Origin: Geosiphon pyriformis uo1
Taxonomy: Eukaryota > Fungi > Glomeromycota
NCBI GenBank assembly: GCA_016748015.1
Contig: JAAOMT010000096.1
Coordinates: 195,955 to 259,954 of the forward strand
DNA: 64,000 nt
Direction: 5' to 3'
Below the pieces are notes generated by a model. The model saw only the letters and a list, made by a program, of their open reading frames with translations. It was not told where the DNA came from and did no database searches. This document shows positions 1-51,330 of the stretch, one piece after another; position 1 is the stretch's first letter, and each line of letters begins with the position of its first letter. Both the position numbers and the translations under genes were made by a program.

Positions 1-3000
1 AATCGGAAAGCTATTTCCGCGAATATTTCAAGAGCAAACTTGAAAAGCAAAAGTGTGCCCTTTTTCTAAGTCGTCAACTAAAAATGCGAGAATTGGAGAT
101 TATTGTCAAGGATGGATTGAAGCTGAATGATCTTTTCACACCTTTAGAGGATGAATTGAAAGTTTTGGAGAAGGAAAAAAAAGAGATCAAGATAAAGCAA
201 AAAGCAAGTTTAAAAGAAGATGCGGCACTCGTCGAAAAATTTGGACGGCGTTCTTTAAAATACGCCTACAGGTAACAAATCTGAATGAAACTCCTCTGAG
301 TGAACTTAGTTTCAAATATTAATCATACCTATTTTCACAGTTTTTTCGAATCACTCTTGCAAGAGGATAAGGAAAAGATGCCCGAATCTGGTATATTCAA
401 TTTTCATAGCTCGTTAAACCTTTCTTTGATCTGTTGAAAAGGCAAATAACTCCTGAATCAACACATCTCGAACTTCAATCAAGGTACAAAACTTGGCCAA
501 AATGAAGGACAAACTGACGGTCAAGGGGGATTCAATGAGTCACTATCATCTGGTTCGAGCAAAGAAAAAATAGAAAGCGAGACTGCAGCAGATGAAATTA
601 GTAAGAAAATTTGCTTTTGAAATTTTATAAATGAAACTATATCTTCTAAATTTAAACCATATTATGCATCTTTAAAATTATAACTTAGTGGCTGAATATA
701 TAAAAGACAATTACCCAGATATTATACCAAAATTTGAAGAAGCTATTACTGCTATAAACTATAGACCATGGTTTGATATGAAATGCCGTTTAACCTTTGC
801 AAGACATATTGGTTTGTCCTCAGATATTCCTTCCACCCCAACAAATAATTCGGACAGAGCGGCCGATGAACCAGCTTTCACTGTATCACAAATATTTTTG
901 GATAAAGAGAAGAACCTCTTTAATTTAGTAAAAAAATATACCAGACAGCCCGATGAAACTGGGGCAAAAGCGGTTCTGAGCTTCTTCGTTGGAGGTAATA
1001 TGCAGTATAGGCAAAATATTATTGACAAAGTAATTGAAGAAGCCAAAAACCTTGGAGATATTGACTTCGTCCGTCAAAAGTTAAGCCAGGAAGATGAGGA
1101 TATTGTCTTTGCATTTTTTGAAGAATATAAGCGTTGGCGAAAACAAGTTTTTCCGAGTAATTTGAAAAATGTCATCCAAAAGATCGATTCAAATTTAAAC
1201 CTTTCCAAGCTTCATAGCAAGATTGATACTGAATTTCAACAAAAGGAACAAGCCTTGTCAAAACGACATTTAGAAAGGATTTGTACTGAGGTCGAACTCA
1301 GATATCCCACCGGAGAAAAGCTAATTATTTTAAACCTGGAAGGTAATAGTAAAATAATTATACATATTTTTTGTCCTTTTCGAAAAATTTTAATCACTGA
1401 ATTCATTCCTCATTTACAAATATAGCAAATTCACCATACTCATACCGTCGTCATTTTAAAATGCTTCGTGAATTCGAAGTTGTTCGGCCTGCTTTGCTTC
1501 GCTTCACAATTTATACGACTCAATTGAGTGCAGAGGATAATATGCAACTCGATAAAGATCATTACTTTATACCACAACCGCGCTTGCATTTTTTTGGAAG
1601 AAATTTGGAAACTTCATTTGAGCTTGATCCTGAGGCATATGAACTGAGGTTGCTTTGGCTTGAATTTTGTTTTCGAAGTTTTATCACCAACTCACTTGAT
1701 TATTTTTTTAGACACATAGCACAATTAGAAAATAAAAAGTTCCTAGTATTTCTTTGGCATAAATCGACCCACAGGCTTGAGATTTACTTTGATACAATTC
1801 AACGGCTGCCTAAGACTATTCACGATCAATCTCCGTTGAAAAAACTCAATACGGGTGAACACTTCCTTTTAGCGGTTAATGAACCTAAAGGTTTAATAGC
1901 CATATATAACACTGAGAGGGCTGTGGTATGCATAGGTCACTTTTGAGTCGTCTGTAAAAATTATTACCTGCATGAAATTAACCCGTTATCTTATTGTTTT
2001 CTAAGCTCAATACTTATGGCTTTGAGCAAGAGCAATCGAGTCTCTATTTGCATTATCGCAATATACAACTGTTGCATTGGTATAATGATGCGATTCCCGA
2101 AATATCACATTTTTTCTTCATTAAAAACACCGAGGATATTTGCTTTGTAGAGAAGGATGGTAGAGCCAAAATTTATAACTTGGTAAATGACAATTTTCGA
2201 CCTGGAATTTCTCATTTTCCGGCAAACTCCAAGAAAGTCATGAGCACCCCTGATGGCACGTGTATCGTCGCTTTTGTAAAAGAGCGAATGAACATATCTT
2301 TTGGGAGCCATCAAGATGAAATCGAGGATCAAAATGTGCCAGACGAATGTGACTCGTCAACAGACACTGCTTCTGAGGATGAACCGATAGCTAATGGTTT
2401 GGAGGATGAAGTTTTGAGAGATTTAGCTGGTGCAGAACCTGATGTCATAGGAAAAGAAGTAGATAATTATATCGCCAAGGGGTATATATACTTTTGCGAG
2501 AACTTTACACGAGATGCTAATAAAATTGTTGAGATTCCATTACTGAATCCTTCAATTGAAATTTTCGAGTTTTCCATGTTTGATAAACGACAAATCCATC
2601 TTACAACAATCGATCAGGAAAAGGGTATTTTCCATTCAGCCATGGTCAAAATGACTCACGCAAAAACTCAATACAGATTTGAGCGCCAGTCACGCAACAA
2701 ATCTTTGGGTCAAATCAAATTAGAAGGCCGACGACCCTTTACAATTCATGGCAAAGGCACAAAATTCATGCGTGATATTCGCATCGGGGACTATTTGGTT
2801 TTGGGCCAGGAAAAACGACAAGTAGCTGAGATTTTGTCAGACACACTCCTTAAAATATCCCCTCAGGCTCCTCAATTTGTCAAATTTGAATACGGCGTAT
2901 GGAAAGATTTCGGCATTGAACAAAGAAATACAGTTAATGGACTGATCGATGTTTACTCCATGGTATTCACAAAATATGCCATCAACAGCCCAATCGGTCG

Positions 3001-6000
3001 TGTAGATCAACCTTTGACGCTGACTATTGTATTAGAAATTTCTCCCGAGAATCCTTTGAATTTGAAAGAATGCCACAAAAGATTCCGAAAATATGTGGAT
3101 AAAATGTTTTTGAAGTTTAAAAAAGACACGAAAAAACCAATTGGCCATTTGAAACATTTTAATACTAACTTCACGACTTTCCAAGCATTTGATAATTTCG
3201 AGGTACATGCTAACACGTACCAACTCGGCGAGTAGGTTTCCCGATTGTTTTCTTTGTTCACTGCCATCGCTTTGTTGCTTTCAGTGCTGGTCAAACTTAA
3301 AAATCTTCACTGAATATGTACAACAGATGGATGGTCGATTTCTTTTGCTTGATTCCTCTTCAGATCGCTGTTGCCCGAGATAATGAATTCGTTCCATTGC
3401 AAGATGGTCTATTTTCTCTTGATATCGAAAAACCTTCATTAGATGATGGATATGGATTCATTGGCAGCGTCAGCAAGGCTATTTCTTTTGGTTGGTACGA
3501 GGCCATATTCGAACATTATGCTAATCTAGAAGTGAAAGTTGTTTCATCAATGGGGGAGCAATCATGTGGTAAGTTTTATTATACGCCGTGAAAATTTCCA
3601 TTGAAAATATCGTCTGATGTTTTATTTTTGAAATCGAAAAGGGAAAAGCTATTTATTAAATCATTGTGTCGGTTCAACCTTTGATGGATCTGCAATGGTT
3701 TGTTTAGAGTGGTATATCAACTTTGAAATTTAAAAATGGTATTAAATTTGCTTCAAATCAATTCTCCAATTAGCGTTGTACTGAAGGCGTTTGGATGTCT
3801 TTGGGTGAGTATTAGTCAATCTATGTTCAAAGTCTTTTCTACTCGTAAAAACTTAGTCGTAATATAACGATGATTATGCTTCTCGACACTAGTCAAAACC
3901 GACGACGTTCTTTATGTAGCGCTTGATTTTGAAGGTAGGTAGATTTTTGAATTTCGCACCTTGAATTAATAGCTTTCAAATTCATGAAAATCATTTACAA
4001 TTCCAGGACTTGCCAGTATCGAAAGAACGCCTCAAGAAGAAACCTTTTTACAACTCTTGAATGCTGCACTTTCTAACCTTGTTTTGTTCAAAAGTCAATT
4101 CGCCGTGAGTCGCGATATCTCAACAATGTTTCAACGCTTTCAGGACGGGACGAATTATTTTGGTGATGATCCAGACATTTTCCAGGTGATGAATATTTAA
4201 CTAGTTTAAACTTATTTTCCTTTTGAGATGGATTTAATCCTCACGGTTTGCATCTTCAAAATAAATTTCAATGAATAGGCAAGATTTTGTATTATTATTA
4301 AAGATGTAGCACGGTCAGATCGAGAAGATATTGTATCCGAGTTTCAGTCAAAGTTTTCAAAAATCGTTGACAAGGTTCGTCAAAGTGTTGAATTTTCTCT
4401 TTTAAAATATGAACGAATAAAATTCTATATATTTGAACACTGCAGGAAGAAGAAGATAATTTCATAACAAAACTCTATCGCAATGAAATGAGCATTGTCC
4501 CATGGCCAGTTTTCAATGAGGCTTCCTTTTACACAACTTTTAAGCAATTGAAGGTTAAATTGGATGGACAAAATTCCAAGTATAAGAATGCACGAATTTT
4601 TGTTGAAAAAATTAAGGTAAATTTAAGAATAAGAATTACTGAATCTTCACATGTGCACCATGTTTAATTAACAACTTAAAATTGTGGCTTACAAGGTTCT
4701 GATGACAAAGCTAAAGTACAGTAAACTATTTTGCTTCTCTTTAGTTGCTTTATTTTTACTTTGATTTAATTTGCTTTGATTTTCGTTGTATATTCAGAGT
4801 TTGCGATTGGGGCAGTGTCCAAGCAACATTAATTACTATGCGCACTTTGGAATTGAAGAAATTTTTGAAGGATGCAATATCATGTGGATTTGAGCAAAAA
4901 GAAGATTTTGAGATGGATATTTCCGCCGACAACACAGTATCAAACACTAATCCATTTGAAAATCAATCGACATTGAATACCAAACACCTTATGGTATATT
5001 TCGAAATTTATTTAATCGTTTTTTTTGCAAAGTAGCTACTGGAGCTTAGAATTTGTCACTTTATTAGAGCCGTGACGATGGCCAATTAATTCCTGACCCA
5101 GAAGTTTCACTCGTTGAAATATTTCATGACATTGAGAATGACTCAACAAAACTAATGCCCGATGCTGGCTTGGTTTTATTGAAGGATGGGATGACGCTAA
5201 CAAACCTTTCCTCGGGTTAGTAATATAATATCACTATCAATTATAATTGCCATTTTATAACTCGTTTCGCAAAACTTACCTTTTCTTTATTTAATGCGCA
5301 GATCTGAGAAGCTTTTTTGAGGAAAAAGTACAACCACGTGGTCAGATTCCCGATTCTCAATGGCTAGAGGAACTCGAGATTTTTGTCAAATTTATTATTC
5401 AAAGGCGCATCAAACGTGTACAGCAATGGTTTGCACGAAACACTAATCGCTTCGAGAAGGAACAGAATGAAATTGTTATTACAAACTATGCACTCGAGCA
5501 AGAAATCAGCAGACTAAGTTTATTCTGGAATTTTTGTCGTCTTCGATGTAATGATTGTGGGCTTTTATGTATGAAAGCGAGTCGTCACAGTGACAACGAG
5601 CAAGATATGACTCATGACTGTTTAACTGATCACAAATGTCATTCAGAATGTCAATTCAGCGAAGCTCATTTAGATCAGACTATACCAAAATGTAATAAGT
5701 TTGCAGGTCACGAGGGTCGTCATGCTTGTGAACAAAGTCATGCCTGCGGTGCTCCTTGCGTTTATGATGGGAAAAGAAATTGCCAGTCAAGATGTACTAA
5801 AGACATTGGCCATGAGTCAAATAACGGAAATGAAATTCATTTATGTGAGGCTACACGTCATTATTGTGGATCCCCATGTTCATTGAAGGCCGAGACACAA
5901 AAGGGGGAATACGAATGTCATAATACTTGTATTGTAAGTTTCTATCTCAAGTTTTTCCTTCAAAGTTCTTAAAAGCTTATTACATTTATTTCTTCTTAAC

Positions 6001-8587
6001 TTAATTTATCAAACAGATTCCATGTGAGGAAGTGCATTCAGTACATAAATGTGAAAACGAAGTTTGCCCTATTGAATGTCCAATAAGCAATTGCCATCGG
6101 CGGTGCGAAAGCAAAGAACATTTTCATGACCTAGAGGGAAGCATTGACCATTTTTGCGGGTAAATAAAAATGGTTCTAAATGACCAATAAAAATTACCAA
6201 TTTGGAGATCTTATTTTTTTCCCAACTTTATAATAATTTAGTGGAGAGCATCAATGTGTCGAAAAATGCGAAGAAAATGGGATCTGCAAGATTATTACTG
6301 AGCCAACAGCCATTGTAAAAGAGGAAGCTGAATATGTCAACAAATTTGGGAGTTTCATGTTTACTAAAGTAAAAGTTTTTAGTTTGAATTTAATTAAAAA
6401 TCTGCAACTGTTGTTATATTAAGGCTCAGCTAATTAAATTACCGCTTGGAAAATATTTAGTATTCCCAAAGCCCTGAACGACTTCCATGCTGTATTAAAA
6501 TTCCTCCCTACAAATTCAAACATGATGGAAAACATGTACATGAAGAAAAAAAAGAACATAAATGCTCTCGAGATTGTCCGTCTGATATGGGGCTCCACAT
6601 AAAGGAGGAGGATAAAAAGCAATACAATTTTCATTATTGCAATGTAAAATGCCCAAATTGCGGTTATTATGTAAGGTTTCATTTTAAAGTAATTAATTTA
6701 TGATTTTTGAACACTCTTAATCGTTTTAAATTTACTTCAGTGTATATCACCATATGATCATGGCCGGGATTGCAACAGCAAGCATGGTAAACAAAAATTT
6801 CGATATAACTTTTGAAGTTACCAAAATTTCAATTTATAATTTAATCAAATATGGAATTTCTAATTAGCCACTGTACACGGAAATATGTATTTGACAACTT
6901 TCACCTGCGAAGAAGAAGAATTCGAATTTGAAGGTAACTTAACCCTATAACATAAAAAGAAGACCTTGATCATATTGCATTATGCATTCAAGAAAAGTCA
7001 CTTTATGTAAAATCTTCAACTTTAGGACATCGATTAACTGTTGGAGACCATGGTGATTTTGTTCTCTGTCATAAAGTGGGTGTTAAAGCAAATTTTAAGT
7101 TTTAGTTATTAGTTGTATCCAGAAAGTAATCAAATTGAATTGTTCTGTAGCTTTGTGAAAACATAGGCAGGCATCGTCATATCGATTACTGCAAAGATCC
7201 TGATGTTTGCAAAACCCATGGTGGATTGAAAAAGGAAGGAATACTTGAGCATATTAATGGTAGGAAAATCTCTTGAATTTTCACAAGTGAAGATGCTGAA
7301 TTCATTACAATTTTTTAATATGAACAGCTAAAATTAGTCCAAGCCCTCTTCGAGAGAAAGATTATATTTCCCACAAAGTGTATTGGGAGCGAACTGACTT
7401 CCAAGGTAAAGCTTTTGGAGCCATTTTCCATATGGCTTGGAACTTATCTCAAATATGAATTCTCTTTTAAATTCTTTACATATTTTGTTAAGACCCATAT
7501 AATAAGGATCAACGAGAAAATTTTAAACAATGCGATCATGAATGTGCTGATGAAAAGCATCATAAGATTGACGACGTTACTGGAAGAGATCCTGTCAGAT
7601 CATTTTGCACTCAAGATATCTTCCATGCAAAATTAGATCATACAAAGGCTCCTCCCGGAAATACTGGATATGTTACAGTAGACGGTCATCATTTTGCCTG
7701 TGAGAATCCGGTAACAAATATTGGAAACTTCCATATTATATTTGTCGTTGATAGAAGCGGCTCAATGGGTGACCAGGATTGTCAACCTCGTTGTAGCAGT
7801 ACCAAAACAAGTCGACTCTTGCTTTCTCATAAAAATCGGCTCGGAGCTGTATATGAAGCTTGTTATTCATTTATTGAGACGCGTAAAAATTCTCGTCAAA
7901 ATACAAGTGCTGGCCAATCAGCCATTGATCGTGACACAGTATCTCTTGTACTCTTTGATACCGGGGCAATAATACCATTTGAGAATCGAAGTCTCTCGAA
8001 CTCTGACGAACTTTTGCGAATTATGATGCAATATCACCCATCGGGTGGAACCTGTTATCAAGCAGGAATACTGAAAGTTGCTGATATAATTAATCAATAT
8101 CATGACCCCACAAGGTAAGTTCAGTCTTGATCTTACGATTCTTTTCAAAGTTTGGATTTTATTAAAAAAGCAAAAAAAATTTTCCAGGACCAATATCGTT
8201 CTTTTTTTATCTGATGGTGAAAGCTATGGTTCTCATGATCAAGAATTGAGAGATTTATGTAATCGGGAGGCGAGCCGAGGGTAATTCTTCAATGATGCTG
8301 AGTTATGATTGTATTCATTCGTTCGTGCTAAAATGAATATTTCATTTGCATCTCTTTAAAGCTCCCCATTGTTCTTGTATACAGTTTTGTTTGCGGCCGA
8401 TGGACATAGCGGTCAATCACTCAAGACCATGGTCGATATTGCGAATCAATATCATCCAAAAGGCAACGCAAAAGATGCGCTCAAATGTCAGTATGCGCTG
8501 GCGGTAGACGAAATCAAGCTTGCCATGCATTTTACTCAAGTTGCCGAAAGTTTACGCAAACATCAACCAATGTTGATCAAGAAGTGA
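1..8587 (+). CDS. Giant multi-exon GBP/RHD3/VLIG-type GTPase + Cys/His-rich region + C-terminal vWA protein, copy A (5' end outside the window)
   Basis: Track ORFs 84-275, 688-1425, 1461-1946, 1994-3235, 3316-3591, 5571-5972, 7765-8118 and 8369-8587 join in frame through GT..AG introns. The P-loop SSMGEQSC|GKSYLLNH is split by intron 3569-3641. It is followed by GSAMRCTEGVWMSL (G2), LDFEGL (G3) and IIIKDV (G4-like). vWA motifs: FHIIFVVDRSGSM (DxSxS), PSGGT, LFLSDGE. No internal stop was seen in the exons checked. Collinear with copy B. Confidence 0.9.
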
Positions 8588-11095
8588 AGGAACCTTGCGA
8601 AATATAAAGGAATAGCAACAATCATAGAATCGCAATTAAAATGAGTCAGATTAATTATCAAGGACACTGATCGATATTTTTCTTGAAAGTTTTTAACCGA
8701 TCCCCACCTAACCCACAATAATAAACTTTTTCTGCTCCTAAAAACGAAGACATCTGTGATTTGAGAATATAATTGCTTCAAATTGAAACTTTATTGGACT
8801 AAATAAGATAAAATTTTTTTCAAGTTTGAAAACCAATTTAAATGGTGCTATTTTTTAGAGCAGAAATGATAATTGCGTTGTGATCAAATTTTTATTATAT
8901 ATATTCTACATAATTTCTAAACGCCTACATTCAAACCCAATTAAACTCCATATTACCATGCAAGTCCAATTAGGCTCCGCGTCGGCCTAAACCGACTCAT
9001 TTTTAGCAAGATAGCAAAGGAGCACCTTGATATTCTTATCGAGCTCTGTTTTGTATTGAAGGCAGCGAAACACTTTGGATCCATTACAGAATCCACCAAT
9101 TTTGCTTGTGTATCCTCCTGTGCAAATAACTATTTAACGCCATGAATGCTCAGGTATCTTGTCTATTACACATAGCTTGTCATATACATGACAGAAACAA
9201 TGAATCATATGACAACCAAACTTTGGTTATCATTGACAATTAGTGACACACATTATCGTAATCAAATTGTGTTTTTTTTGAAATGGTTAAAAACAGTGTA
9301 ACAGTAAAAAAATATGAAATCAAATTATGGTTTAAAGTTATTTTTCAATATTTCGAGGAGTCTTGAAAAGGTTTCATGTTACGTGTACATAGTTTGAATT
9401 AACCCATAAAAAGTACTTTGAGAAATGGTTTATTAATTAAAATATTAAATGGGCCATTAAAATCTATCTTGTGAATATCAGATTTTTTATGCATGCCAAC
9501 CGGAATAAAAATAGAACCATTGAAAAGATTAAGCAACGGAGAATTTAAAAATAGGATATATATATTTTTTGGGTAATCCTATTGCATACTTTTAGTAAAA
9601 CTTCAAGTTAAAAAACCATGAAGATAGGTGAAAAGATAAAAGGCTTAACCTTTTTTTTTTTTTTTTTTAATAAGTGTATATTGCGCCTCACATCCTGAGA
9701 AGGTACGACTAACTACAGTTATAAAGTTAATGGTTAAGCGATTCCTATTCAGATAAGAAAATTTATTTATGACCATAAGAAATATTTATTCGCTTCCAAA
9801 GATTGGATAATAGTGTCATTATAAAATATAGCTTGTGAGAATACTTTTTATAATAATAAATTGAAAAAATAAAAATTATATTTTTTAAAATATTGAAATT
9901 AATATTTTAAACATTAATTCATCCTAACGAGTTCGGCAAATGCGATACTCAAAATTTTCAACTTTTTTATAGTTCTTTGTCTAAAAATTTTTTGGGTTAA
10001 AATATAATAAATTTATTAGTAAAAAATATATACACTCTAATACATGTACATTTATCCTTGAAGAGATTAATATAATTAAAGTTTTTTTTTCAATATATTT
10101 TCTTTTAAAAAAGATCACCTAATCGAAATAATAACTAATAAAATTAATCATACAAATAGAATATCAAAGAGATGCTCAATCTATTTTAAACTCGTCTAGA
10201 TACAATATATAGGATAATTCACTTTAAATTCTCAAATTCAGGTAAATAGATTAATTCTTTAATATATCATTTATAAAGTAAAAGTGAATAAATTCAATGG
10301 ACAAATCTGTTGAAAATTTAACTATTTGAGCATTTAAAAACACAACTTGTATAAAATTCTCTTGGTTGAATTATTACTCTTGTTGAGTCGTTTCTACCAT
10401 TTAATTTATGAGTTTCTCTGATTCTCTAAAGAATAATTATTTTATAAGCCTTAAATCATAAAGATATTAAAAAATTCCACCAAATACCATTTAAATTTTC
10501 TGGCAGTAGAACGATTCTCAGGGAGGTTAGCATAAAGATCAAAGAAAACCTTGATAATGCTATTCAACATGTTACACAATTTTTAATTGAGATTATCCAA
10601 ACTAATTGTCCTAGAAATTCTATTTATAATGGAGAAAGGGAATCAATTTTTTTTACAAATTCCCGTGTTTTAAAAAGGAAATCTGTGAATTGAACAAAAA
10701 GTTTTAAGAAAAATTAAATGATGATAAATAATATTAATCATGATCTATATTTGGTAAACGCCTCATCTCAATGATCGATGTTTAAGTTTTTCCAGGTTTC
10801 ACACGAAAAAGCAATCACAATTTCTCCTTTTTTTTGTTTGTTTTTTCTTTTTGTTTATTTATAAAATTTACAGGGATTTTCAGGATTGAACAGGTAATCG
10901 TAATTGAAACATAGAATGATTTGTTGTTATATGAATCATATGATAAACAGAGTATGAACGGGAGGATTATATTTTTTCCCAATTATGGGTTTCGGTTGGT
11001 GTGTAAAATGCATAGAAAAGATAGTGAAGAAAAAAAAAAGAAAAAATGCGGATAGTAGAAAAAATGAAGAAGAAATAAATATCTAGTTTTTTAAA

Positions 11096-11109
11096 CATTA
11101 TCTTGGTGT

Positions 11110-11148
<39 letters not shown>

Positions 11149-11509: not shown

Positions 11510-12321
11510 ATTTTTTTCAATTTAAAAAATTGAGCTGGTTAAGTTTTTCTTGAGAAATTTGCTTAGAATTTAAGAAACAAGATTTTGCTTGTGATTTAAT
11601 AATTTCATTTTTAGAATTTGTATAAATTAAAAAGTAAAATTTTATGATAAGATCAAAGCTGTTTGTAATTATTTTTCAAGACAAAACTCTTAAAAATCAA
11701 AGTAGACAAAAAGAGAAAATTAAAAATGAGGACTCAAAACAAATCTAAAATCAAGAAATTGAGATTTGATTGATTTAGTTTTTTAAACACACGAGATGCA
11801 TTTGAGTAGTGAAAGGAAAAAGCCTTAGCAGATCCCCTTTGTATATATATAAAATTTCAGGAAATATGTAAATATTTAATTTGAATATAACGTTTTAATT
11901 TTATAAATAGAAATTAAAATCTTTTTAAAGTAAAGTTATTATAAAACACTAGTTATTTTCTTTTTTGAAATTATTTTTGATCTTCAAGACACATAAGAGC
12001 ACAAAAAATCGTGAAGCAAATCATTTATTAAAAAAAGATACCGTAAACTATGTAATTTCAATCAATTTTTTAGAAAAGAAATAAAATTCTATTGATTTTG
12101 ATCCAATTAAAAGTGATGGTATGATTGTTTGTGTGGTTGTATGTGAGGTTTTGTGTGTGTGTGTTTTTCGTTTTCTCTTTTCAATACTTCTTTTATTTCA
12201 ATGAACACTCCTGTGGGGCTGGGACACAACATTAAGATTGGATTCACAACAGGATGGCTCTAATAATATTTCCATTATATATAAAGAGAGTCTGTATGAA
12301 GAGATACCATAGTTCTTCCTA

Positions 12322-13930
12322 AGTAATATTAATTATAAAAAATGAATCCACCTTATTCACTTGATAACTCGCAATCTCAAAATCTTAATGTTTTTTCTAA
12401 TAATCAGGATATTTCCCTTGGAAACCGCTATGAAAACATCAATTATAACGGCTTGAATCATATAACTCAAGATCACGCGGCTAATCTTTCATCTGCACCT
12501 TCAGAACTAGCAGGAACTCATTCAAACCAGCCATCTACTCCACGAAATACGGAAGTACAATATATTCAGCAAGGTTTAAATTCTAGATTTATGGATCCTT
12601 CAGCTCAAACGCTTAGGCAAAGACAAATATACAATCAACAAGATCTTTTACAACAAATTGCAAACATAGAGCGGGATCTTTTAAATTCAATACAAAACTT
12701 AGCTCAATTAAGAAATTTTATTTCTGGTACAGTCTGAGAATTGACCTCCTTATAATGATAAATATAACTGAGGATAATCTTGACTCTCAAAACCCTTTTT
12801 CATTCAGATATGAATTTAGAGAGTTATTAGACTCATCTTATCCTGGCTTAAAACTTTGAATTTAACATTAGAAACTAAAATTGTATATTATAAATAGAAA
12901 TTCTATAATATATATTAAGGGAATAAAATATTAAACTTACGCAAAGTTGTTTCTAATTCAAAATATCTTATTGCTTAATAAAAATATTATAAGTCCAGTG
13001 ATTATTTATTTACTTAATCACCAAATCTTTCATGATATCAGACTGCGTTTTTCATTCAAACAGAATCTATGATTTCAATTAGGTGTGTTCGCAGCTATGC
13101 TGCTCTGAGAAAATATATTTATCATCTATATATTTCAAATCGCTATTTAACTGGTTCCTCTTTAGCTTGCTCAATAATAATAATAGCACCCATATTCGAA
13201 CTTTTTCAAATGCATTCATACTCTATTTTTGTGGCAAACAAACTGCCTGCTATTGTAGCAAACAATTAAGAATAAGATTTCAAAAGAGATTAGTAGAATG
13301 TGGCACGAAAAATGACTGAGATTCGAATAAAATTTCAAAGGATGGCTGAGATCACCAACAAGAGCATATAAAAAATTAGGAATACCCGTTAATGTACAAG
13401 AAACCTATAGCTCAACACTGTGAATTCCTAAACGTGATGGTTCTTAATCCTAAAAAAATTCTTGATAATTTTAGTATTTACCGGAAGCCCTTAACAATGA
13501 CGAGTTCTTCATATTCTCAAATGATGTTAACAACAACTCTGACATTTACATTCAAACTCCAACGATTAAATTATATAAAAAGTTTTAACAGATTACTTTT
13601 CAAAAAATAAATGGGTAGATGAATTTTTTAAGGCGTATAATTGCAACTTTTTATACCTCAAACAATTAAACTGTGAAATTTATGGTTAAATGTGTTTTTT
13701 CATGGTACAGTTTAACTGATTTTTGTAAGCTATTATTTTTTCTCATAAAATAGAGAGTTGGCTTTAATTTCTATTACCAGCACTTTTTGAAGATATTTAA
13801 GAAGTAAAAATTTGAAATGGCCAATGATTCCAAAAAGGCAATCAAATAAGGGTCTTTTCAAAAATCTATAATTGGCAATAGCAGTAATAAGGAAATTTCC
13901 AAGGAAATGATCAAAAAGTCTTTATTGTAA
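12322..13930. repeat. Inverted segmental duplication, left copy (partner about 62005-63512)
   Basis: Reverse-complement alignment by eye covers the ORF and about 1.2 kb downstream (e.g. 13620-13820 vs 62105-62310). This copy has an extra segment at about 13022-13294; the partner has one at about 62312-62622. Confidence 0.85.
12342..12737 (+). CDS. 131-aa Asn/Gln/Ser-rich protein with a C-terminal amphipathic or coiled-coil helix; function unknown
   Basis: Single-exon ORF with AAAAAATG start context and TATATAAA about 60 bp upstream. A paralogue at 63098-63492 (-) keeps the same start, stop and C-terminus (QQIAxIERDLLNSIQNLAQLRNFISGTV). Confidence 0.6.
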   Translation: MNPPYSLDNSQSQNLNVFSNNQDISLGNRYENINYNGLNHITQDHAANLSSAPSELAGTHSNQPSTPRNTEVQYIQQGLNSRFMDPSAQTLRQRQIYNQQDLLQQIANIERDLLNSIQNLAQLRNFISGTV

Positions 13931-17085: not shown

Positions 17086-17102
17086 AGAAAAATATATAAT
17101 TT

Positions 17103-24287: not shown

Positions 24288-24323
<36 letters not shown>
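24288..24323. repeat. (TAT)n microsatellite
   Basis: Directly visible. Confidence 0.9.

Positions 24324-24324
<1 letters not shown>

Positions 24325-25726: not shown

Positions 25727-25728
<2 letters not shown>

Positions 25729-25773
<45 letters not shown>
25729..25773. repeat. (ATT)n microsatellite
   Basis: Directly visible. Confidence 0.9.
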
Positions 25774-26259
25774 GATAAATTAGTTTTCAACATATCATTG
25801 AAAGGATAATTCAAAGATTCATGTCAAATTTTTAATGATGATCGAGAAAAATGATAATACTTCAAAATGTCAATATTCTATGCTAATATATATTATTCAA
25901 TCTTCTTTTAAAAAGTCAAATTCACTAAAACATAATCTTTTTGGATATTAAAAATAATAATAATTTAATGTTTTTATAAATAAAAGATTTAGAATTTAAT
26001 TGCTCTGACGGAGTTTTTATTTTACTAAACAGTCATCATCAGAGGGAAACATATTAAAAAGATCGAGTAAAAATTATAATTGTAAGAGGAGTTGATGTAA
26101 TCATTCCAAGAAACTGCCCACTAAGATATATTTTGATTAATTATGTGTTTAAACAATAATGATGTAATGTTTCTGAGCCTAATTGTGCTTGCGCAAAAAT
26201 CTTTAAATACCTTAAGTCGAAGTTTGTAAATTTTCTCAAGAATTCGGTTTTCTATCGTC

Positions 26260-29200
26260 ATGCATCTCCCGCTTGACACTAAGAAAAAAGCTGGTGAATA
26301 CCTGAAAATTCAGATTCGCCCCATGAATTTTACAATATAGACAACTGCTCATCACATTCTTTTTTTTTTGTCGAAAAAGAGGAACCTACCTCGGTTTTGG
26401 AATCGATTTTTTTTTCCACTGAAGAAAAAAATGAAGCTGAAATACAATCAAGTTTACACATAGCCACAAATACAGCTGTTACTTCTTCCCACCCGTCTTC
26501 ACCCGACAAAACTCTTCTTAATGAAGAAGATTTGACCAAAGGTATGATAAAATATATAATTACTATTTCTACAATCACAGCGTAGGATACAACTTTTGAC
26601 AAAAGTGTTTCATAAAGACCAGAAACCTGTCGATATTGACTCTTCATCTGAAGAAGATGAAGGAGTTGTCACAGATGAGATGGATATCGACCCTCTTGAA
26701 CAAAAAAATCATCAAATTAATGGCGAGAGCGCTAGCAGTCGTGATTTCTGTGAATCAATTCCCGGGCTTTATCGTCTACTAGACCTTTGCAAAGACGAAG
26801 GGTCAAATGGTCTTGGTATGTGATTGCTTTCTGAGATTCTTCATTATTAAGCTTGGATTTATATTGACTGTTAATTTACTCTTAAATGTCCATAATTTCT
26901 AGTTGATAAAATTATTATTTCTCAAGAGTTTGTAAAGAAGCTTTGTAACGAGATCGTACCAAACAGTTTCAAATCAATTTCAAAAGTCAATTATAAAAAG
27001 CTAAATTCCAAGGCGATTTCCCTTGTTGGAGTTTATGGTCGGAACGAAATGATTGCAAACTTTCTTTTGCACCAAAACATAATTAACCATTCAATGTAAA
27101 TTTCGGGTTTTCCCAGTCAAGTTTTTTCTTGATTTAATGGGATGAACTTTTTACGCTCATAATTCCTTCAATCTTCTATTCTTAGTCATGGATCGCTCCT
27201 TAACAAAACTTCCCAAACAATAAATCAAGGGGGATCTGATGAGGAGCTCGATACCCTGCGACCTGGAATCTATCTTTTACGTAACCCTCTCAGATCCAAT
27301 GCTTTCAATCCTGCTAAACTTCAATTTTTAGTCATACATTGGAGCGAAGAAGGTTGTTATGAAGATTTGGCATCTTCTCATCGAAAGAAAAACTTGACCA
27401 ATATGCATCGGTATGCTTTGTCAAAGTTCATGGGATTCTCTTTAATTTCAGCTTAACTAATATCTAAAGCTAATGTATTTTTATTATCAAAAGTTATCTT
27501 ACCAAACTGACGGAACATCAAATTTGTTTAATGAATGAAAGAGATTTGGAAAATATTAATTGGCAGGTTTTCGGCAAGGAATTTGACGACGATGAAAAGG
27601 AGTCTGATGAGGAAGATCAAAGTGACGATGATATCTGCTATGATTTTGAGGTTACAAAGAGACAAGAACAAAAAGAAGATTTTGAGCTTTTCCCGGGATT
27701 TGAGGTGTTTAATTTTTCTTTTTTTCTATCCTAAAGAAACTCAGGTCCCCTAATAGATTTAACTCATTCCAAAATTGATTCCTCGCCTTTTGAAATATAC
27801 AAACCTTTATTAGATGCAATTACCGAAAAATATGACTCGTGAACATATTCATCAGAACGAGCAATCTGGAAACCTGGGTCTGGATTCTCTTATCGTTGAA
27901 TCTGTTACCAATCAAACCTTTTTAACGCGAGAGATTGTCCCAGCAACCAAAGTAACCGAAAAAGGACCCATACATTTTGACTCGGAAATCAAATTTCGCG
28001 AATACTTCGAGAGTAAACTTGAAAAGCAAAAATGCGCCCTTTTTCTAAGTCGTCAACTAAAAATGCGAGAATTGGAAATAATCGTCAAGGATGGATTGAA
28101 TCTGCATGATCTTTTCACACCTTTAGAGGATGAATTGAAAGTTTTGGAGAAGGAAAAAAATAAGGCCAAGATAAAGCAAAGAGAAGATCTAAAACAAGAT
28201 GCAAAACTTGTTGAAAAGATGGGATGGGTGCTTTTAAAAGTTCCCTATGGGTAAGATATTGGAAATTCCTTGAGTTAAACTCCGTATCAAAAACTAAAAA
28301 GAACTGTTTTCACAGTGGCTTCGAATCACTCTTGCAAAAGGATATGGAAAAGATGCCCGAATCTGGTATATTCAATTTTCTTAGCTTGTTAAACCTTTTC
28401 TTTGATCTGATTAAAAGACAAAAATCTTTAAAATCAAAACATTCCGAAACCTCAATAAAGGTATAAAGCATGGCCAAAATGAAGGACGAACTGAGTCACC
28501 AAACCTATCATCTGGTTCGAGCAAAGGAGAAATTCAAACTGAGGTTGCGGCAGAAGATTTAAATCATGAAGCTAGTAAGAAAACCAAACTTTGGAACTTT
28601 TTCTAAATGAAACGATATTTTCTAATTTTAAAAACATTTTCTTATCTCTAAAATTTCAACTTAGTGGCTGAATATATAAAAAAAAATTACTCGGATATTC
28701 TGCCAAAACTTGGAGCAGCTATTTCTAATATCAACTATGAACCATGGTCTGAGATAAAATGCCGCTTAATCTTTGCAAGGGAATGTGTTGAGTGGTACTC
28801 GAAGAATTGGGAAAACTCAGCCGATGAGCCAGCTCCAACTGTATCACAAATATTTTTCGATAAAGAAAGGAGCATGTTCAATTTAGTAAAAAAATATATC
28901 AAACAATCTGAGGAAGGTGTAACAAAAAGGTTTTTTAACTTTCTCACCGGAACTAAAGCGCTATATGTAGGAGATATTTTGGACAGTGTAAAGAAAGAGG
29001 TCAAAAACCTTGGAGATGTTGACTTTGTACGTCAAAAATTGAGCCAGGAAGATGAACTTATTGTGGATGCATTTTTTGATGAATATAAGCGTTGGCGAAA
29101 ACATATTTTTCCAAATAACTTGAAAAATGTCATCCAAACAATCGATACAAGTTCAAACCTTTCCAAGCTTGATAGAAAGATTGAGACTGAATTTCAACAA

Positions 29201-32200
29201 AAGGAACAAGCCTTGTCAAAACGACATTTCGAAAGGATTTGTACTGAGGTCGAACTCAAATATCCCATCGGAGAAAAGCTAGTTATTTTAAACGTGGAAG
29301 GTAATAGTAAAATAATTTTACATATTTTTTGTTCTTTTCGAAAAATTTTAACCTCTGAATTCATTCCTCATTTACAAATATAGCAAATTCACCATACTCA
29401 TACCGTCGTCATTTTAAGATGCTTCGTGAATTCGAAGTTGTTCGGCCTGCTTTGCTTCGCTTCACAATTTATACGACTCAATTGAGTGCAGAGGATAATA
29501 TGCAACTCGATAAAGATCATTACTTTATACCACAACCGCGCTTGCATTCTTTTGGAAGAAATTTGGAAACTTCATTTGAGCTTGATCCCGAGACATATGA
29601 ACTGAGGTTGCTTTGGCTTGAATTTTGTTTTCAAAGTTTTATCACCAACTCACTTGATTATTTTTTTAGACACATAGCACAATTAGAAAATAAAAAATTC
29701 CTGGTATTTCTTTGGCATAAATCGACTCAGAGGCTTGAGATTTACTTTGATACAATTCAACGGCTGCATAAGGCTATTCATGATCAATCTTCATTGAAAA
29801 ACCTCTATACAGGTGAACACTTCCTTTTAGCGGTTAATGAACCTAAAGGTTTAATAGCCATATATAACACCGAAAGGGCTGTGGTATGCATAGGTCACTT
29901 TTGAGTCATCTGTAGCAATTATTATCCGTATGAAATTAACCCGTTATCTAATTGTTTTCTAAGCTCAATACTTATGGCTTTGAGCAAGAGCAATCGAGTC
30001 TCTATTTGCATTATCGCAATATACAACTGTTGCATTGGTATAATGATGCGATTCCCGAAATATCACATTTTTTCTTCATTAAAAACACCGAGGATATTTG
30101 CTTTGTAGAGAAGGATGGTAGAGCCAAAATTTATAACTTGGTAAATGACAATTTCCGACCTGGAATTTCTCAGTTTCCGGCAAACTCCAAGAAAGTCATG
30201 AGCACCCCTGATGGCACGTGTATCGTCGCTTTTGTAAAAGAGCGAATGAACATATCTTCTGGGACCCATCCAGAAGAAATCGAGGATCAAAATATGCCAG
30301 ACGAATGTGACTCGTCAACAGATACAGATTCTGAGGATGAACCGATAGCTAATGGTTTGGAGGAAGAGCCTCATGTCATAGGAAAAGAAGTAGATAATTA
30401 TATCGCCAAGGGGTATATATACTTTTGCGAGAACTTTACACGGGATGCTTGTAAAATCGTTGACATCCCATTAGCACACTCCTCGATTGAAATTTTCGAG
30501 TTTTCCATGTTTGATAAACGACAAATCCATCTTACAACAATCGATCATGAAAAGGGTATTTTCCATTCAGCCATGGTTAAAATGACCCACGCAAAAACTC
30601 AATACAGGTTTGAGCGCGAGTCACGCAACAAATCTTTGGGTCAAATCAAATTAGAAGGCCGACGACCCTTTACCATTCATGGCAAAGGCACAAAATTCAT
30701 GCGTGATATTCGCATCGGGGACTATCTGGTTTTGGGCCAGGAAAAACGACAAGTAGCTGAGATTTTGTCAGACACACTCCTTAAAATATCCCCTCAGTCT
30801 CCTCAATTTGTCAAATTTGAATATGGCGTATGGAAAGATTTCGGCATTGAACAAAGGAATACAATTAATGGACTGATCGATGTTTATTCCATGGTATTCA
30901 CAAAATATGCCATCAACAGCCCAATTGGTCGTGTAGATCAGCCTTTGACGCTGACTATTGTACTAGACATTTCCCCGAATAATCCTTTGAATTTGAAAGA
31001 ATGCAACAAAAGATTCCGAAAATATGTTGACCAAATGTTTTTGAAGTTTAAAAAAGACACGAAAAAACCAACCGGCCATTTGAAACATTTTAATACTAAC
31101 TTCACGACTTTCCAAGCATTTGATAATTTCGAGGTACATGCTAACACGTACCAACTCGGCGAGTAGGTTTCCCGATTGTTTTCTTTGTTCACTGCCATCA
31201 TTTTTTTGCTTTCAGTGTTGGTCAAACTTCAAAAATCTTCATTGAATATGTACAACAGATGGATGGTCGATTTCTTTTGCTTGATTCCTCTTCAGATCGC
31301 TGTTGCCCGAGATAATGAATTCGTTCCATTGCAAGATGGTCTATTTCTTCCTGAAATCGCCAACAATTCATTAGATGATGGATATGGATTCATTGGCAGC
31401 GTCAGCAAGGCTATTTCTTTTGGTTGGTACGAGGCCATATTCGAACATTATGCTAATCTAGAAGTGAAAGTTGTTTCATCAATGGGGGAGCAATCATGTG
31501 GTAAGTTTTATTATACGCCGTGAAAATTTCTATTGAAAATATCGTCTAATGTTTTATTTTTGAAATCGAAAAGGGAAAAGCTATTTATTAAATCATTGTG
31601 TCGGTTCAACCTTTGATGGATCTGCAATGGTTTGTTTAGAGTGGTATATCAACTTTGAAATTTAAAAATGGTATTAAATTTGCTTCAAATCAATTCTCCA
31701 ATTAGCGTTGTACTGAAGGCGTTTGGATGTCTTTGGGTGAGTATTAGTCAATCTATGTTCAAAGTCTTTTCTACTCGTAAAAACTTAGTCGTAATATAAC
31801 GATAATTATGCTTCTCGACACTAGTCAAAACCGACGACGTTCTTTATGTAGCGCTTGATTTTGAAGGTAGGTAGATTTCTGAATTTCGCACCTTGAATTA
31901 ATAGCTTTCAAATTCATGAAAATCATTTACAATTCCAGGACTTGCCAGTATCGAAAGAACGCCTCAAGAAGAAACCTTTTTACAACTCTTGAATGCTGCA
32001 CTTTCTAACCTTGTTTTGTTCAAAAGTCAATTCGCCGTGAGTCGCGATATCTCAACAATGTTTCAACGCTTTCAGGACGGGACGAATTATTTTGGTGATG
32101 ATCCAGACATTTTCCAGGTGATGAATATTTAACTAGTATAAATTTATTTTCCTTTTGAGATGGATTTAATCCTCATGGTTTGCATCTTCAAAATAAATTT

Positions 32201-35200
32201 CAATGAATAGGCAAGGTTTTGTATTATTATTAAAGATGTAGCACGGTCAGATCGAGAAGATATTGTATCCGAGTTTCAGTCAAAGTTTTCGAAAATCGTT
32301 GACAAGGTTCGTCAAAGTGTTGAACTTTCTCTTTCAAAATATGAACGAATTAAAATGACATTTATTCGAATAATACAGGAAGAAGAAGATAATTTCATCA
32401 CGAAACTATATCGCAATAAAATGAGCATTGTTCCATGGCCAGTTTTCAATGAGGCTTCTTTTTACACAACTTTTAAGCAATTGAAGGTTAAATTGGATGG
32501 ACAAAATTCAAAGTATAAAAATGCACGAATCTTTGTAGAAAAAATTAAGGTAAATTTCACTATGGTAATTTGTTCTCTTAAAAGCATTGCTATAATTGAC
32601 TATGCTCTGTCTTTAATAATAACTCTCCCTTACAAGGTTCTGATGACAAAGCTCAAGTTCAGTAAAATTTTTGTACTTTGCTCATGCATTTTTTGATTTT
32701 TCTTTAATTTAATTGGTTATATTTCTTTTGAATTCAGAGTCTGCGATTGGGGCAGCGTCCAAGGAACATTATTAACGATGCGCACTTTAGAATTGAAGAA
32801 ATTTTTGAAGGATGCAATATCATGTGGCTTTGAACAGAAGGAAGATGCTCTACATGTTGAGCTGGATTTATTTGAAAATCATTCTGCACTGAATATCAAA
32901 CATCTTATGGTAATCTTTTAATATAGCTTTATGAATTAGCTGTTTAGCTTTAAAAACTGGTAAAGCGTTATTGAATTCTTAGAGCCGTGATGATGGTCAA
33001 TTAATTCCTGACCCAGAAGTTTCGCTCGCTGAAATATTTGATGAAATTGAGAATGAATCAACAAAACTAATGCCCGATGCTGGCCTTGTTTTACTGAAAG
33101 ATGAGTCAACGCTTACGGACCTTTCCTCAGGTTAGTAATATATTTCCCAAATCAAATAACTATCCATAGGAATTCTAATTTTTATCTTCTTGTAGACCTG
33201 AGAAGCTTTTTTGAGGAAAAAGTACAACCACGTTGCACGATTCCTGATTCTCAATGGATAGAGAAACTCGAAAATTTTGTCAAATTTATAATTCAAAGAC
33301 GTATCAAACGTGTACAGCAATGGTTTGCACGAAATACTAATCGTTTCGAAAAGGAACAGAATGAAATTGTTATTACAAACTATGCACTCGAGCAAGAAAT
33401 CAGCAGACTAAGTTTATTCTGGAATTTTTGTCGTCTTCGATGTAATGATTGTGGGCTTTTATGTATGAAAGCGAGTCGTCACAGTGACAACGAGCAAGAT
33501 ATGACTCATGACTGTTTGACCGATCATAAATGTCATTCAGAATGTCAATTCAGCGAAGCTCATTTAGATCAGACTATACCAAAATGTAATCAATTCGCAG
33601 GTCACGAGGGTCGTCATGCTTGTGAACAAAGTCATGCCTGTGGTGCTCGTTGCGTTTATGATGGGAAAAGAAATTGCCAGTCAAGATGTACTAAAGATGT
33701 TGGCCATGAGTCAACTAGCGGAAATGAAGTTCATTTATGTGAAGCTACACGTCATTATTGTGGATCTCCGTGTTCATTGAAGGCCAACACACAGAAGGGG
33801 GAATATGAATGTCATAATACTTGTATTGTAAGTTTCTATTTCAGGTTTTTCCTTCAAAGTTCTTAAAAGCTTATTACATTTATTTCTTCTAAACTTAATT
33901 TATCAAACAGATTCCATGTGAGGAAGTGCATTCAGTACATAAATGTGAAAACGAAGTTTGCCCTATTGAATGTCCAATAAGCAATTGCCATCGGCGCTGC
34001 GAAAGCAAAGACCATTTCCATGACTCAGAGGGAGGCATTAACCATTTTTGCGGGTAAATAAAAATGGTTCTAAATGACCAATAAAAATTACCAATTTGGA
34101 GATCTTATTTTTTTCCCAACTTTATAATAATTTAGTGGAGAGCATCAATGTGTCCAAAAGTGCGAAGCAAACGGGATCTGCAAGATTATCACTGAGCCAA
34201 CAGCCATTGTAAAAGAGGAAGCTGAATATGTCAACAAATTTGGGAGTTTCATGTTTACTAAAGTAAAAGTTTTTAGTTTGAATTTAATGAAAAATCTGAT
34301 ATAAGCCCCAGCTAATTAAATTACCGCTTGGAAAATATTTAGTATTCCCAAAACGATGAAAGACTTCCATGCTGCATTAAAATTCCTCCCTACAAATTCA
34401 AGCATGATGGAAAACATGTACATGAAGAAAAGAAAGAACATAAATGTTCTCTAGATTGTCCGGCTGATATGGGGCTCCACATAAAGGAGGAGGAGAAAAA
34501 ACAATACAATTTTCATTTTTGCAATGTAAAATGCCCGAATTGCGGTTATTATGTAAGGTTTTATTTTAAAGTGATGAATTTGCTATTCTGTCATGATTTT
34601 TTGAACATTTTTAATCATTTTAAATTTACTTTAGTGTACATTACCATATAATCATGGCCTAGATTGCAACAAGGAACATAGTAAAGAAAACTTTCCATTT
34701 TTAAATTTTTAAAATTTCCACAATTCAGTTTATAATTTAATGAAACATGGAATTTCTTAATCAGCTACTGTACACGGAAATATGTATTTGACAACTTTTA
34801 CGTGTGAAGAAGAGGAGTTCGAGTTTGAAGGTAAATAATCAATTTTGATCAGTCTTCGAGTTAGAAAGACCTTATTCATTTTCTAAAATCTACTATTCAC
34901 CATTTTAGGACATCGGTTGACTGTGGGAGATCGTGGTGATTTTGTTCTCTGTCATAAAGTGAGTATTAAAGCAACTTTTGTTTCTTAATCATAAGTTTAT
35001 CTAGCAAGTAATCAAATTGAATTTTTCTGTAGCTTTGTGAAAACATAGGCAGGCATCGTCATATCGATTACTGCAAAGATCCTGATGTTTGCAAAACCCA
35101 CGGTGGATTGAAAAAGGAAGGAATCCTTGAACACATCAATGGTAAGAAAATACTATGGAGCTTTTAAAATTTTCATACCCAGAGTGAAATTAATGAATTT

Positions 35201-36464
35201 TTATGAAAATAGCCAGTATCAGCCCAAACCCTAATCGACAGAAAGATTATATTTCCCACAAAGTCTATTGGGAGCGAACTAACTTCCAAGGTAAGTTTTT
35301 GCTTATTCCATGAATTGTTGCTCTACTTAATACAAACTTAATAGAGAACATGTAACATTGCTTTAAGACCCATACTCTAAAGATGATCGAGATATTTTCA
35401 AAAAATGCGATCATGAATGCAAAGATGAGAAACATCATAAGACTGACGCCGTTACCGGAAGAGATCCTGTCAGATCATTTTGCACTCAAGATATCTTCCA
35501 TGCAAACCTAGATCATACAAAGGCTCCTCCTGGAAATACTGGATATGTTACAGTAGACGGTCATCATTTTGCCTGTGATAATCCGATAACAAATATTGGA
35601 GACTTTCATATTATATTTGTGGTTGATAGAAGCGGCTCAATGGGTGGCACGGATTGTCAACCTCGTTGTAGCAGTACCAAAACGAGTGCACTCATGCTTT
35701 CTCATAAGAATCGGCTCGGAGCTGTATATGAAGCTTGTTATTCATTTATTGAGACGCGTAAAAATTCTCGTAAAAATATAAGTGCTGGCCAATCAGCCAT
35801 TGATCGTGACACAGTATCTCTTGTACTCTTTGATAGCGGGGCAATAATACCATTTCAGAATCAAAGTCTCTCGAACTCTGACGAACTTTTGCGAATTATG
35901 AGGCAATATCACCCATCGGGTGGAACCTCTTATCAAGCAGGAATACTGAAAGTTGCTGATATAATTAATCAAGATCATGACCCCACAAGGTAAATTCAGT
36001 CTTGATCTTACGATTCTTTTCATAGTTTGGATTTATTAAAAAAGCAAAAAATTTTCTCCAGGACAAATATCGTTCTTTTTTTATCTGATGGTGAAAGCTG
36101 GGGGAGTTCTCATGATCAAGAATTGAGAAATTTATGTAATCGGGAGGCGAGCCGAGGGTAATTTTACAATGATGCTGAGTTATGACTGTATTCAATCGTT
36201 CATGCTAAAAGGAATATTTCATTTGCATCTCTTTAAAGCTCCCCATTGTTCTTGTATACGGTTTTGTTTGCGGCCGATGGACATAGCGGTCAATCACTCA
36301 AGACCATGGTTAATATTGCGAATCAATATCATCCAACAAGCAACGTAAAAGACGGTCTCAAATGTCAGTATGCGTTGGCAGTAGACGAAATCAAGCTCGC
36401 TATGCATTTTGCACATGTTGCCGAAAGTTTACGCAAACATCAACCTATGTTATTCAAGAAATGA
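26260..36464 (+). CDS. Giant multi-exon GBP/RHD3/VLIG-type GTPase + Cys/His-rich region + C-terminal vWA protein, copy B (complete; about 35 exons, about 2,500 aa by manual splicing)
   Basis: Proposed start ATG at 26260 (MHLPLDTKKKA|E, spliced in frame to 26380); the start is less certain than the rest. N-terminal block GLYRLLDLCKDEGSNGL|VDKIIISQEF..LVGVYGRNE..LRPGIYLL..IHWSEEG..RYLTKL. P-loop GEQSC|GKS is split by intron 31501-31573. vWA motifs VDRSGSM, PSGGT, LSDGE. Stop TGA at 36462-36464. Confidence 0.9.

Positions 36465-51265: not shown

Positions 51266-51330
<65 letters not shown>

Follow-up and report, generated by a model that had tools for sequence, protein, structure and literature searches.

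Two giant GTPase genes, here called copy 1 and copy 2, lie in a 64-kb stretch of contig C597 in the 128-Mb Geosiphon pyriformis assembly, which was the genome searched. This whole stretch, AT-rich with a GC content of 15-38%, is referred to below as the window. Our reading, to which we give a probability of about 0.65, is that they are two intact, recently duplicated genes of a multi-phylum fungal family of soluble giant GTPases that would act by the mechanism proposed below. Together with a third paralogue on contig C788, the two copies form a Geosiphon-specific clade whose members exchange sequence by gene conversion. The encoded proteins consist, in order, of an N-terminal GBP-like fold, a linker, a middle domain, a large GTPase (LG) domain, a Cys/His array and a vWA domain (Table 1).

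When the window was compared with itself by blastn, a single long direct match was found, joining positions 3-8591 to 27982-36468 at 88% identity. After 10 kb of upstream DNA had been added, the repeat unit was seen to start 1,455 bases 5' of the window for copy 1 and at 26523 for copy 2, and the unit is therefore about 9.95 kb long. The two copies are 27,980 bases apart on the same strand, with 17.7 kb of DNA between them, and encode proteins of 2,505 (P0160) and 2,428 (P0161) amino acids. This agrees with the original prediction, made from the sequence alone, of same-strand tandem paralogues about 28 kb apart and about 2,500 residues each. One correction to it is that the start of copy 1 is located 1,777 bases 5' of the window, with exons 1 to 6 and the start of exon 7 outside.

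The gene models are supported by conserved splice sites, by open frames and by protein conservation across species. The 34 introns of copy 1, which measure 63 to 153 bases, are all of the GT-AG type. When exons 3 to 35 of copy 1 are mapped to copy 2, no splice site is lost and the length differences are all multiples of three. Open frames without internal stop extend over 2,441 codons in copy 1 and 2,419 codons in copy 2, for which a corrected 35-exon reading was joined solely for the checks of frame, stops and the ratio of nonsynonymous to synonymous divergence (dN/dS). Both copies are intact genes. The search queries were single exons or the database proteins P0160 and P0161, which had been recovered by a word search seeded with the third paralogue, P0001; the family of long proteins was found by a HMMER search seeded with the largest exon (404 amino acids). 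Public annotations of the family are error-prone. The P0161 annotation of copy 2 omits an intact exon (26903-27095) and shortens another (36062-36157), itself intact, which carries the aspartate (SDGE) of the metal ion-dependent adhesion site (MIDAS). The P0001 annotation (locus L009, contig C788) omits two small exons that run from the Lys-Ser end of the P-loop through RCTEG.

The LG domain spans residues ~1375-1600 of P0160. The intact P-loop (GEQSCGKS), RCTEG and DFEG announced by the original prediction were located in both copies, as was a G4-like IIIKDV. Among 34 family members, the G1 residues G, Q, S, G, K and S are each at least 90% conserved, and the T, E, G and W of switch I, the D, F, E and G of G3 and the Asp of G4 are conserved or invariant. 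The best Pfam match of the domain is URGCP_GTPase (PF25683), which scored 34.2-35.8 bits, below its cut-off of 55, and covered at most profile positions 169-243 of 396. RHD3_GTPase reached 20-23 bits, below its cut-off of 42.4, and Pfam GBP 17.9-21.1 bits against a cut-off of 21.1; the URGCP, RHD3 and GBP matches were found in 26 to 31 of the 34 members. A phmmer search of PDB sequences with the whole of P0160 gave no match, and the family profile matched GBP1, Sey1p, GBP2 and GBP5 at about 1e-6, the Sey1p match (1.7e-6) reaching G4. The AlphaFold2 (AF2) model of the domain, with a predicted local distance difference test score (pLDDT) of 69, had RNF112, GBP1, atlastin and Sey1p as top Foldseek matches (E 1e-9 to 1e-7). 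In VIA-align, the model gave Z scores of 16-17 over 215-236 residues with SMG9, GBP2, Sey1p, atlastin-1, atlastin-3 and GBP1, and other GTPases scored no higher than about 10. By its motifs and its predicted fold, the domain is a GB1/RHD3-type LG domain, and its proposed place in the GBP/atlastin/Sey1/VLIG clade is borne out by the motifs, the profile and the Z scores. As to the closer resemblance to VLIG/URG4 that had been suggested for RCTxG, URGCP_GTPase is the best Pfam match, but at 34-36 bits against 55, and the structural scores put the domain no nearer to one member family than to another.

A comparable fold is predicted at the N-terminus, at residues ~110-300 of P0160. In copy 2, GVYGRNEM (27028) stands at the place of GxxxxGKS, LRPGIY is found at 27256 and HWSEEG at 27337, and no Lys-Ser/Thr is conserved in the family at the P-loop position. 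The leading Foldseek matches of its AF2 model (mean pLDDT 75) were almost all GBP, atlastin or RNF112, with weak E values of 1e-3 to 0.1. The top 8 of 48,161 chains in VIA-align were GBP1 (Z 7.3), atlastin-1 (6.9), Sey1p (6.3), GBP2 (6.0), SMG9 (6.0), RNF112 (5.9), atlastin-3 (5.8) and again SMG9 (5.2), and a GB1/RHD3-type G-domain cluster formed the top row of an ESM Atlas shape search. Nothing meaningful was found for this region in Pfam or, by family profile, among PDB sequences, and the ESM Atlas feature search was uninformative. With moderate confidence, based on the predicted structure, we consider this region a degenerate, probably nucleotide-free LG fold.

Downstream of the LG domain, the Cys/His-rich region covers ~490 residues, with 9.4% Cys and 8.8% His, matching the several hundred residues first noticed. 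It starts with five tandem units of 36-44 amino acids, each bearing eight conserved Cys/His. Across 33 family members, from chytrids to basidiomycetes, 70 of the 90 Cys/His are at least 90% conserved; the region is therefore a conserved module and not a hypervariable one, ranks with the best-conserved parts of the protein, and is probably zinc-binding. No match to it was found in Pfam, in PDB sequences or in named ESM Atlas clusters, and the Atlas feature search was uninformative. A search with its alignment profile, aimed at shorter proteins in which the module stands in a different setting, returned solely fragments of the same family. The vWA domain that follows exceeds the Pfam VWA_2 cut-off, and the DxSxS, Thr and Asp of its MIDAS are present in both copies, as had been predicted.

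The middle domain is conserved across the family, and neither it nor the linker has a Pfam or PDB sequence match. The middle domain includes a motif of ~40 residues, TIxGxGTxF...GD...R.V..I.SDT.L (~2738-2860 in copy 1, 30609-30821 in copy 2), which resembles a unit that recurs 12 to 22 times in giant bacterial proteins, about every 70 residues; among these are a protein from a metagenome-assembled genome of the FCB group and a cyanobacterial 'baseplate assembly protein'. The GTPase protein has neither a signal peptide nor a membrane segment, the highest Kyte-Doolittle 19-residue mean being 1.53, and the lack of both a signal peptide and a terminal membrane hairpin had been correctly anticipated. 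The most hydrophobic stretch, GEWMVDFFCLIPLQIAVA (P0160 residues 1310-1328; window ~3327-3380, copy 2 ~31259-31312), is located about 60 residues before the P-loop; it is conserved in the family and lies below the threshold used for a membrane span. No NACHT or NB-ARC Pfam family was found in any protein segment, which places the protein outside the fungal NLR/STAND group.

Table 1. Positions of the two giant GTPase-vWA genes and of their domains, motifs and conversion tracts in the window.
Feature	Copy 1	Copy 2	Strand	Remarks
Gene, copy 1 (P0160)	1-8587		+	2,505 amino acids, 35 exons; exact exon mapping, translation identical to P0160
Gene, copy 2 (P0161, G9A89_007419)		26260-36464	+	2,428 amino acids as annotated; shared exons and splice sites intact
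N-terminal GBP-like fold without P-loop		26750-27600	+	Candidate pseudo-GTPase; copy 1 equivalent 5' of window
Variable linker	341-1342	28316-29300	+	Copy 1 exons 8-10, P0160 residues 484-757
Middle domain	1426-3231	29384-31162	+	Copy 1 exons 11-13, P0160 residues 758-1312 (~550 residues)
LG domain	3327-4616	31259-32549	+	Copy 1 exons 14-20; GEQSCGKS, RCTEG, DFEG and IIIKDV in both copies
G1 GEQSCGKS	3553-3649	31485-31581	+	Intron-split; motif scan
G2 RCTEG (RCTEGVW)	3774	31706	+	Motif scan
G3 DFEG	3925	31857	+	Motif scan
G4-like IIIKDV	4291	32223	+	Motif scan
Near-identical tract, copy 1 and copy 2, introns included	3617-4205		+	Identical runs of 255 and 258 bases; recent gene-conversion tract
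Block shared by copy 1 and C788 paralogue	4521-5270		+	Informative sites: 41-44 (copy 1 = C788) against 22-40 (copy 1 = copy 2)
Block shared by copy 2 and C788 paralogue	6818-7573		+	Informative sites: 41 and 32 (copy 2 = C788) against 29 and 31 (copy 1 = copy 2)
Cys/His-rich region	5535-7725	~33429-35600	+	P0160 residues 1784-2270
vWA domain	7735-8584	35610-36461	+	P0160 residues 2274-2505; Pfam VWA_2 37.3 bits in copy 1 (cut-off 27); complete MIDAS (DRSGS, GGT, SDGE) in both copies
MIDAS DRSGS	7750	35625	+	Motif scan
MIDAS SGGT	8041	35916	+	Motif scan
MIDAS LSDGE	8207	36081	+	Motif scan

The proteins were compared with the known systems that they recall. Like GVIN1/VLIG-1 and URGCP, they are very large soluble proteins whose G domain has URGCP_GTPase as its best Pfam family, although their scores fall short of the PF25683 cut-off and, by this measure, leave them outside URGCP/GVIN. 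GVIN1 is described as having two LG domains with predicted LG dimerisation (bioRxiv 10.1101/2025.03.24.645074). The fungal layout, in which linkers lie between the putative LG-like fold at the N-terminus and the LG domain proper, recalls that description; the matches of the N-terminal fold to LG domains are weak, however, the fold lacks a P-loop, and the Cys/His array and vWA domain are absent from GVIN1 as described in the same paper.

The likeness to GBP1-7 lies in the LG fold (Z 16-17), in the profile matches to GBP1, GBP2 and GBP5 and in the G1, the switch I Thr in TxG(I/V)W, the DxEG and the (R/K)D of G4, all of which are found in the fungal protein. The Ser in GEQSCGKS presumably occupies the place of the P-loop arginine finger of GBP1, by what we take the GBP1 sequence to be. 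GBP genes form multi-copy clusters with gene conversion, as does the fungal family. Unlike the GBPs, the fungal protein has no match to the GBP_C helical domain and does not exceed the Pfam GBP cut-off, and it is about four times longer, with extra domains. Sey1p/RHD3 and the atlastins share the LG fold (Z 16-17) and, for Sey1p, the profile match, and the GxQSxGKS type of P-loop is, we assume, also that of Sey1p. They differ in having a membrane hairpin, and the RHD3 score of 20-23 bits against 42.4 keeps the fungal protein out of that family. Nesting of the G domain within Sey1/atlastin was a check set by the original prediction, and identity as Sey1 was rejected on the lack of a hairpin, the RHD3 score and the presence in Geosiphon of a separate Sey1 orthologue on contig C630 (44-86 bits per exon).

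Structural comparison placed SMG9 near the top of the matches for the LG domain (Z 16.9) as well as for the N-terminal fold (Z 6.0), and SMG8-SMG9 offers a precedent for a G domain paired with a G-like fold. SMG8 and SMG9, however, are two distinct small proteins that belong to the kinase complex of nonsense-mediated decay, and no sequence similarity to them was detected. The five tandem C-x3-6-H-x-C-x3-4-C cores of the Cys/His region recall the core of the NFX1-type finger in NFX1/ZNFX1, whose consensus we take to be C-x(1-6)-H-x-C-x3-C(H/C)-x(3-4)-(H/C)-x(1-10)-C. This strict pattern was not found in the 33 members, nor was a Pfam match, and by sequence the likeness is one of the motif core alone.

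The proteins of copy 1 and copy 2 are 88.8% identical. With a dS of 0.186, a dN of 0.061 and a dN/dS of 0.33, purifying selection acts on both copies. Identity along the unit is a mosaic: most blocks, introns included, are 93-100% identical, and identity drops to 69-88% in three stretches (window 74-1050, 4430-5370 and 6590-7530). The longest identical run is 258 bases, whereas simulation of evenly distributed differences, done 1,000 times, gave longest runs with a mean of 56 bases and a ceiling of 106. The paralogue on C788 served as the comparison sequence for informative sites. Most blocks of the unit join copy 1 with copy 2 rather than with C788; in one block, copy 1 has at least as many informative sites in common with C788 as with copy 2, and in another, copy 2 has more in common with C788 than with copy 1 (Table 1). 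Gene conversion thus takes place among the three Geosiphon paralogues, between contigs as well.

The linker is the fastest segment of the protein. Its DNA is 69-79% identical between copies, its dN is 0.2-0.33, and its dS (0.28-0.58) is the highest of the protein; because dS peaks there alongside the raised dN, dN/dS is 0.55-0.95. Most of the linker has no counterpart in the C788 paralogue that tblastn could detect. As dN/dS stays below 1 and the C788 counterpart is missing, the linker looks like a relaxed, indel-prone segment unhomogenised by conversion rather than a recognition surface. The local hypervariable segment of the original prediction therefore exists as a fast segment, but does not look like a target of diversification.

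All named relatives are fungal, and their annotations read "hypothetical" or "VWFA domain-containing". The family was seen in many Glomeromycotina, in Endogone and Basidiobolus, in the chytrids Phlyctochytrium and Dinochytrium, and in Agaricomycetes that include Suillus, Paxillus, Serendipita, Tulasnella, Rhizoctonia, Cantharellus and Phellopilus, with few copies per species among the named Agaricomycete matches. No Ascomycota or Mucorales were among the named matches, in searches that were not exhaustive. Literature searches yielded no description of a fungal giant GTPase-vWA family, in keeping with the original prediction, which spoke of similar architectures as uncharacterised fungal hypothetical proteins. 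By adjacent locus tags, tandem arrays are present in Diversispora, Rhizophagus clarus and Funneliformis, and lineage-specific duplication has produced many clusters in Rhizophagus, Diversispora and Funneliformis. The family is thus tandem and multi-copy in Glomeromycotina, and not single-copy, the state that the original prediction had named as speaking against it.

In a maximum-likelihood tree of 72 G domains, clades are resolved for Basidiomycota, Basidiobolus and chytrids. Glomeromycotina form a clade of 52 rows (support 96) with two well-supported subfamilies and species-level expansions, within which the three Geosiphon copies make up one clade (support 98), sister to Ambispora. Profile searches of the Geosiphon genome found three intact loci only, and one decayed, where a fourth middle-domain exon is interrupted by stop codons (C589:94338-95306, minus strand, L005-L007). 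URGCP_GTPase-like exons outside the family were seen at C453:181128-181373 and C666:480476-480712 (37-39 bits); both loci probably represent further giant GTPase genes.

Low GC and dispersed degenerate repeats, with 622 and 1,015 first-look candidates, mark the 17.7 kb that separate the copies and the sequence 3' of copy 2. A very AT-rich, degenerate repeat at 54860-58724 is dispersed in dozens of copies over many contigs, at 65-80% identity. The segments 12322-13890 and 62026-63511 are an inverted pair of a low-copy element, about 50 kb apart and 82-83% identical by blastn (87-93% in the best arms), with one further weak copy in the genome. A high-copy transposon at 12300-13900 was accordingly rejected, only 2-3 copies being found. 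The setting is TE-rich, as supposed, with regard to the dispersed repeats, but not with regard to the 12.3-13.9 kb element. A class-3 lipase frame (Pfam Lipase_3) lies 3' of each GTPase copy on the opposite strand (19040-20216 and 50950-51845, both minus). The two lipase frames are only distantly alike and therefore lie outside the recent duplication; their membership in the same duplicated segment was rejected. An uninterrupted frame of 554 amino acids at 42391-44055 (minus strand) has no Pfam match, and its last ~165 residues recur at about ten other genome loci with 28-56% identity.

Taken together, these features suggest how the proteins may work. On binding GTP, the LG domains would pair and the proteins would assemble into larger complexes, by analogy with GBP, with atlastin and with what has been proposed for GVIN1. 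At the N-terminus, the dead LG-like fold would probably be a built-in regulatory or pairing partner, as in SMG8-SMG9. Zinc probably staples the Cys/His array into a rigid module, and the vWA domain probably uses its MIDAS to clamp an acidic residue on a partner or target protein. As to cellular role, we infer an accessory, non-essential function; conflict, for instance keeping intracellular microbes in check, would be the most attractive guess by analogy.

Several points weigh against this reading. Sequence and predicted folds are the only grounds for GTP binding, hydrolysis, assembly and zinc binding. The two AF2 models reach moderate confidence (pLDDT 69 and 75), and the N-terminal scores are middling (Z 5.2-7.3, Foldseek E no better than 1e-3). 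The comparison of the N-terminal domain with the LG domain by hhalign showed no similarity, so that the LG-like assignment of the former comes from predicted structure alone. About 1,300 residues, in the linker, middle domain and Cys/His region, are without an assigned fold. No RNA run is listed, and the 9.9-kb gene therefore has no transcript support. There is no link from the protein to any target or process. Analogy and the birth-and-death, gene-conversion mode of evolution are what suggests an immune or symbiont-control role, and purifying selection and cross-phylum conservation fit a role unrelated to conflict equally well.

One such role, which is possible but which we hold only tentatively, is a cell-biological accessory function in remodelling membranes, organelles or ribonucleoprotein complexes in coenocytic hyphae, with the vWA domain as a fixed docking site. 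Purifying selection, clades that largely follow fungal phylogeny and the few copies per species among the named Agaricomycete matches are consistent with it, and the structural kinship to atlastin, Sey1 and SMG9 equals that to GBP. The protein has no membrane anchor, however, and the family has duplicated time and again within single lineages, as the many clusters in Rhizophagus, Diversispora and Funneliformis show, which argues the other way. The lack of named Ascomycota and Mucorales matches, in searches short of exhaustive, would also be odd for core machinery.

That the proteins are innate-immune or non-self sensor-effectors, which would recognise a microbe, a virus or an incompatible hypha and assemble as GBPs and GVIN1 do in coating bacteria, appears doubtful. 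The immune GTPases GBP and GVIN1 do belong to the LG clade, but so do atlastin, Sey1, SMG9 and RNF112, which have non-defence roles. The lineage-specific expansions and tandem arrays of Glomeromycotina, sequence exchange among paralogues by gene conversion, the patchy distribution among named matches (no Ascomycota) and a repeat-rich, low-GC setting adjoined by fast-changing secreted-peptide genes all fit a sensor of this kind. A recognition module showing diversifying selection was, however, not found: the sole fast segment has a dN/dS below 1 and is largely missing in one paralogue, and the core domains are strongly conserved across phyla.

Finally, it is very improbable that either copy, or both, is a pseudogene in decay or an artefact of annotation in a repeat-rich region, as might be supposed from the unlisted RNA, the errors in the annotated models of copy 2 and the C788 copy and the decayed copy on C589, because the tests of frame and selection were passed (more than 2,400 open codons in both copies, all splice sites conserved, all indels multiples of three, dN/dS 0.33).

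Under the preferred reading, that of intact members of a fungal family of soluble giant GTPases, the family brings together two LG domains, one apparently active and the other apparently dead, with a probable zinc module and a MIDAS vWA domain, and its members have become numerous in the Glomeromycotina, which are obligate symbionts. GBP/GVIN-type large GTPases are central executioners of animal cell-autonomous immunity, and GBP-like proteins are present in plants and amoebae; we know of no functional study of them in fungi. It is conceivable, though unlikely, that the cell-autonomous defence GTPases of the animal GBP/GVIN type have an ancient fungal counterpart, a double-LG protein that would assemble on intracellular microbes or viral structures and hold them via its MIDAS vWA domain. 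If this were true, the endobacteria of arbuscular mycorrhizal fungi and the Nostoc symbiont of Geosiphon would be candidate targets, and the expansions in Glomeromycotina would reflect endosymbiont management. The architecture points to testable mutants in the P-loop lysine and the MIDAS aspartate. It raises the question of whether fungi form GTPase coats against intracellular microbes, or coats that control them; should the role be unrelated to conflict, the family would still be a new arrangement of dynamin-superfamily parts.

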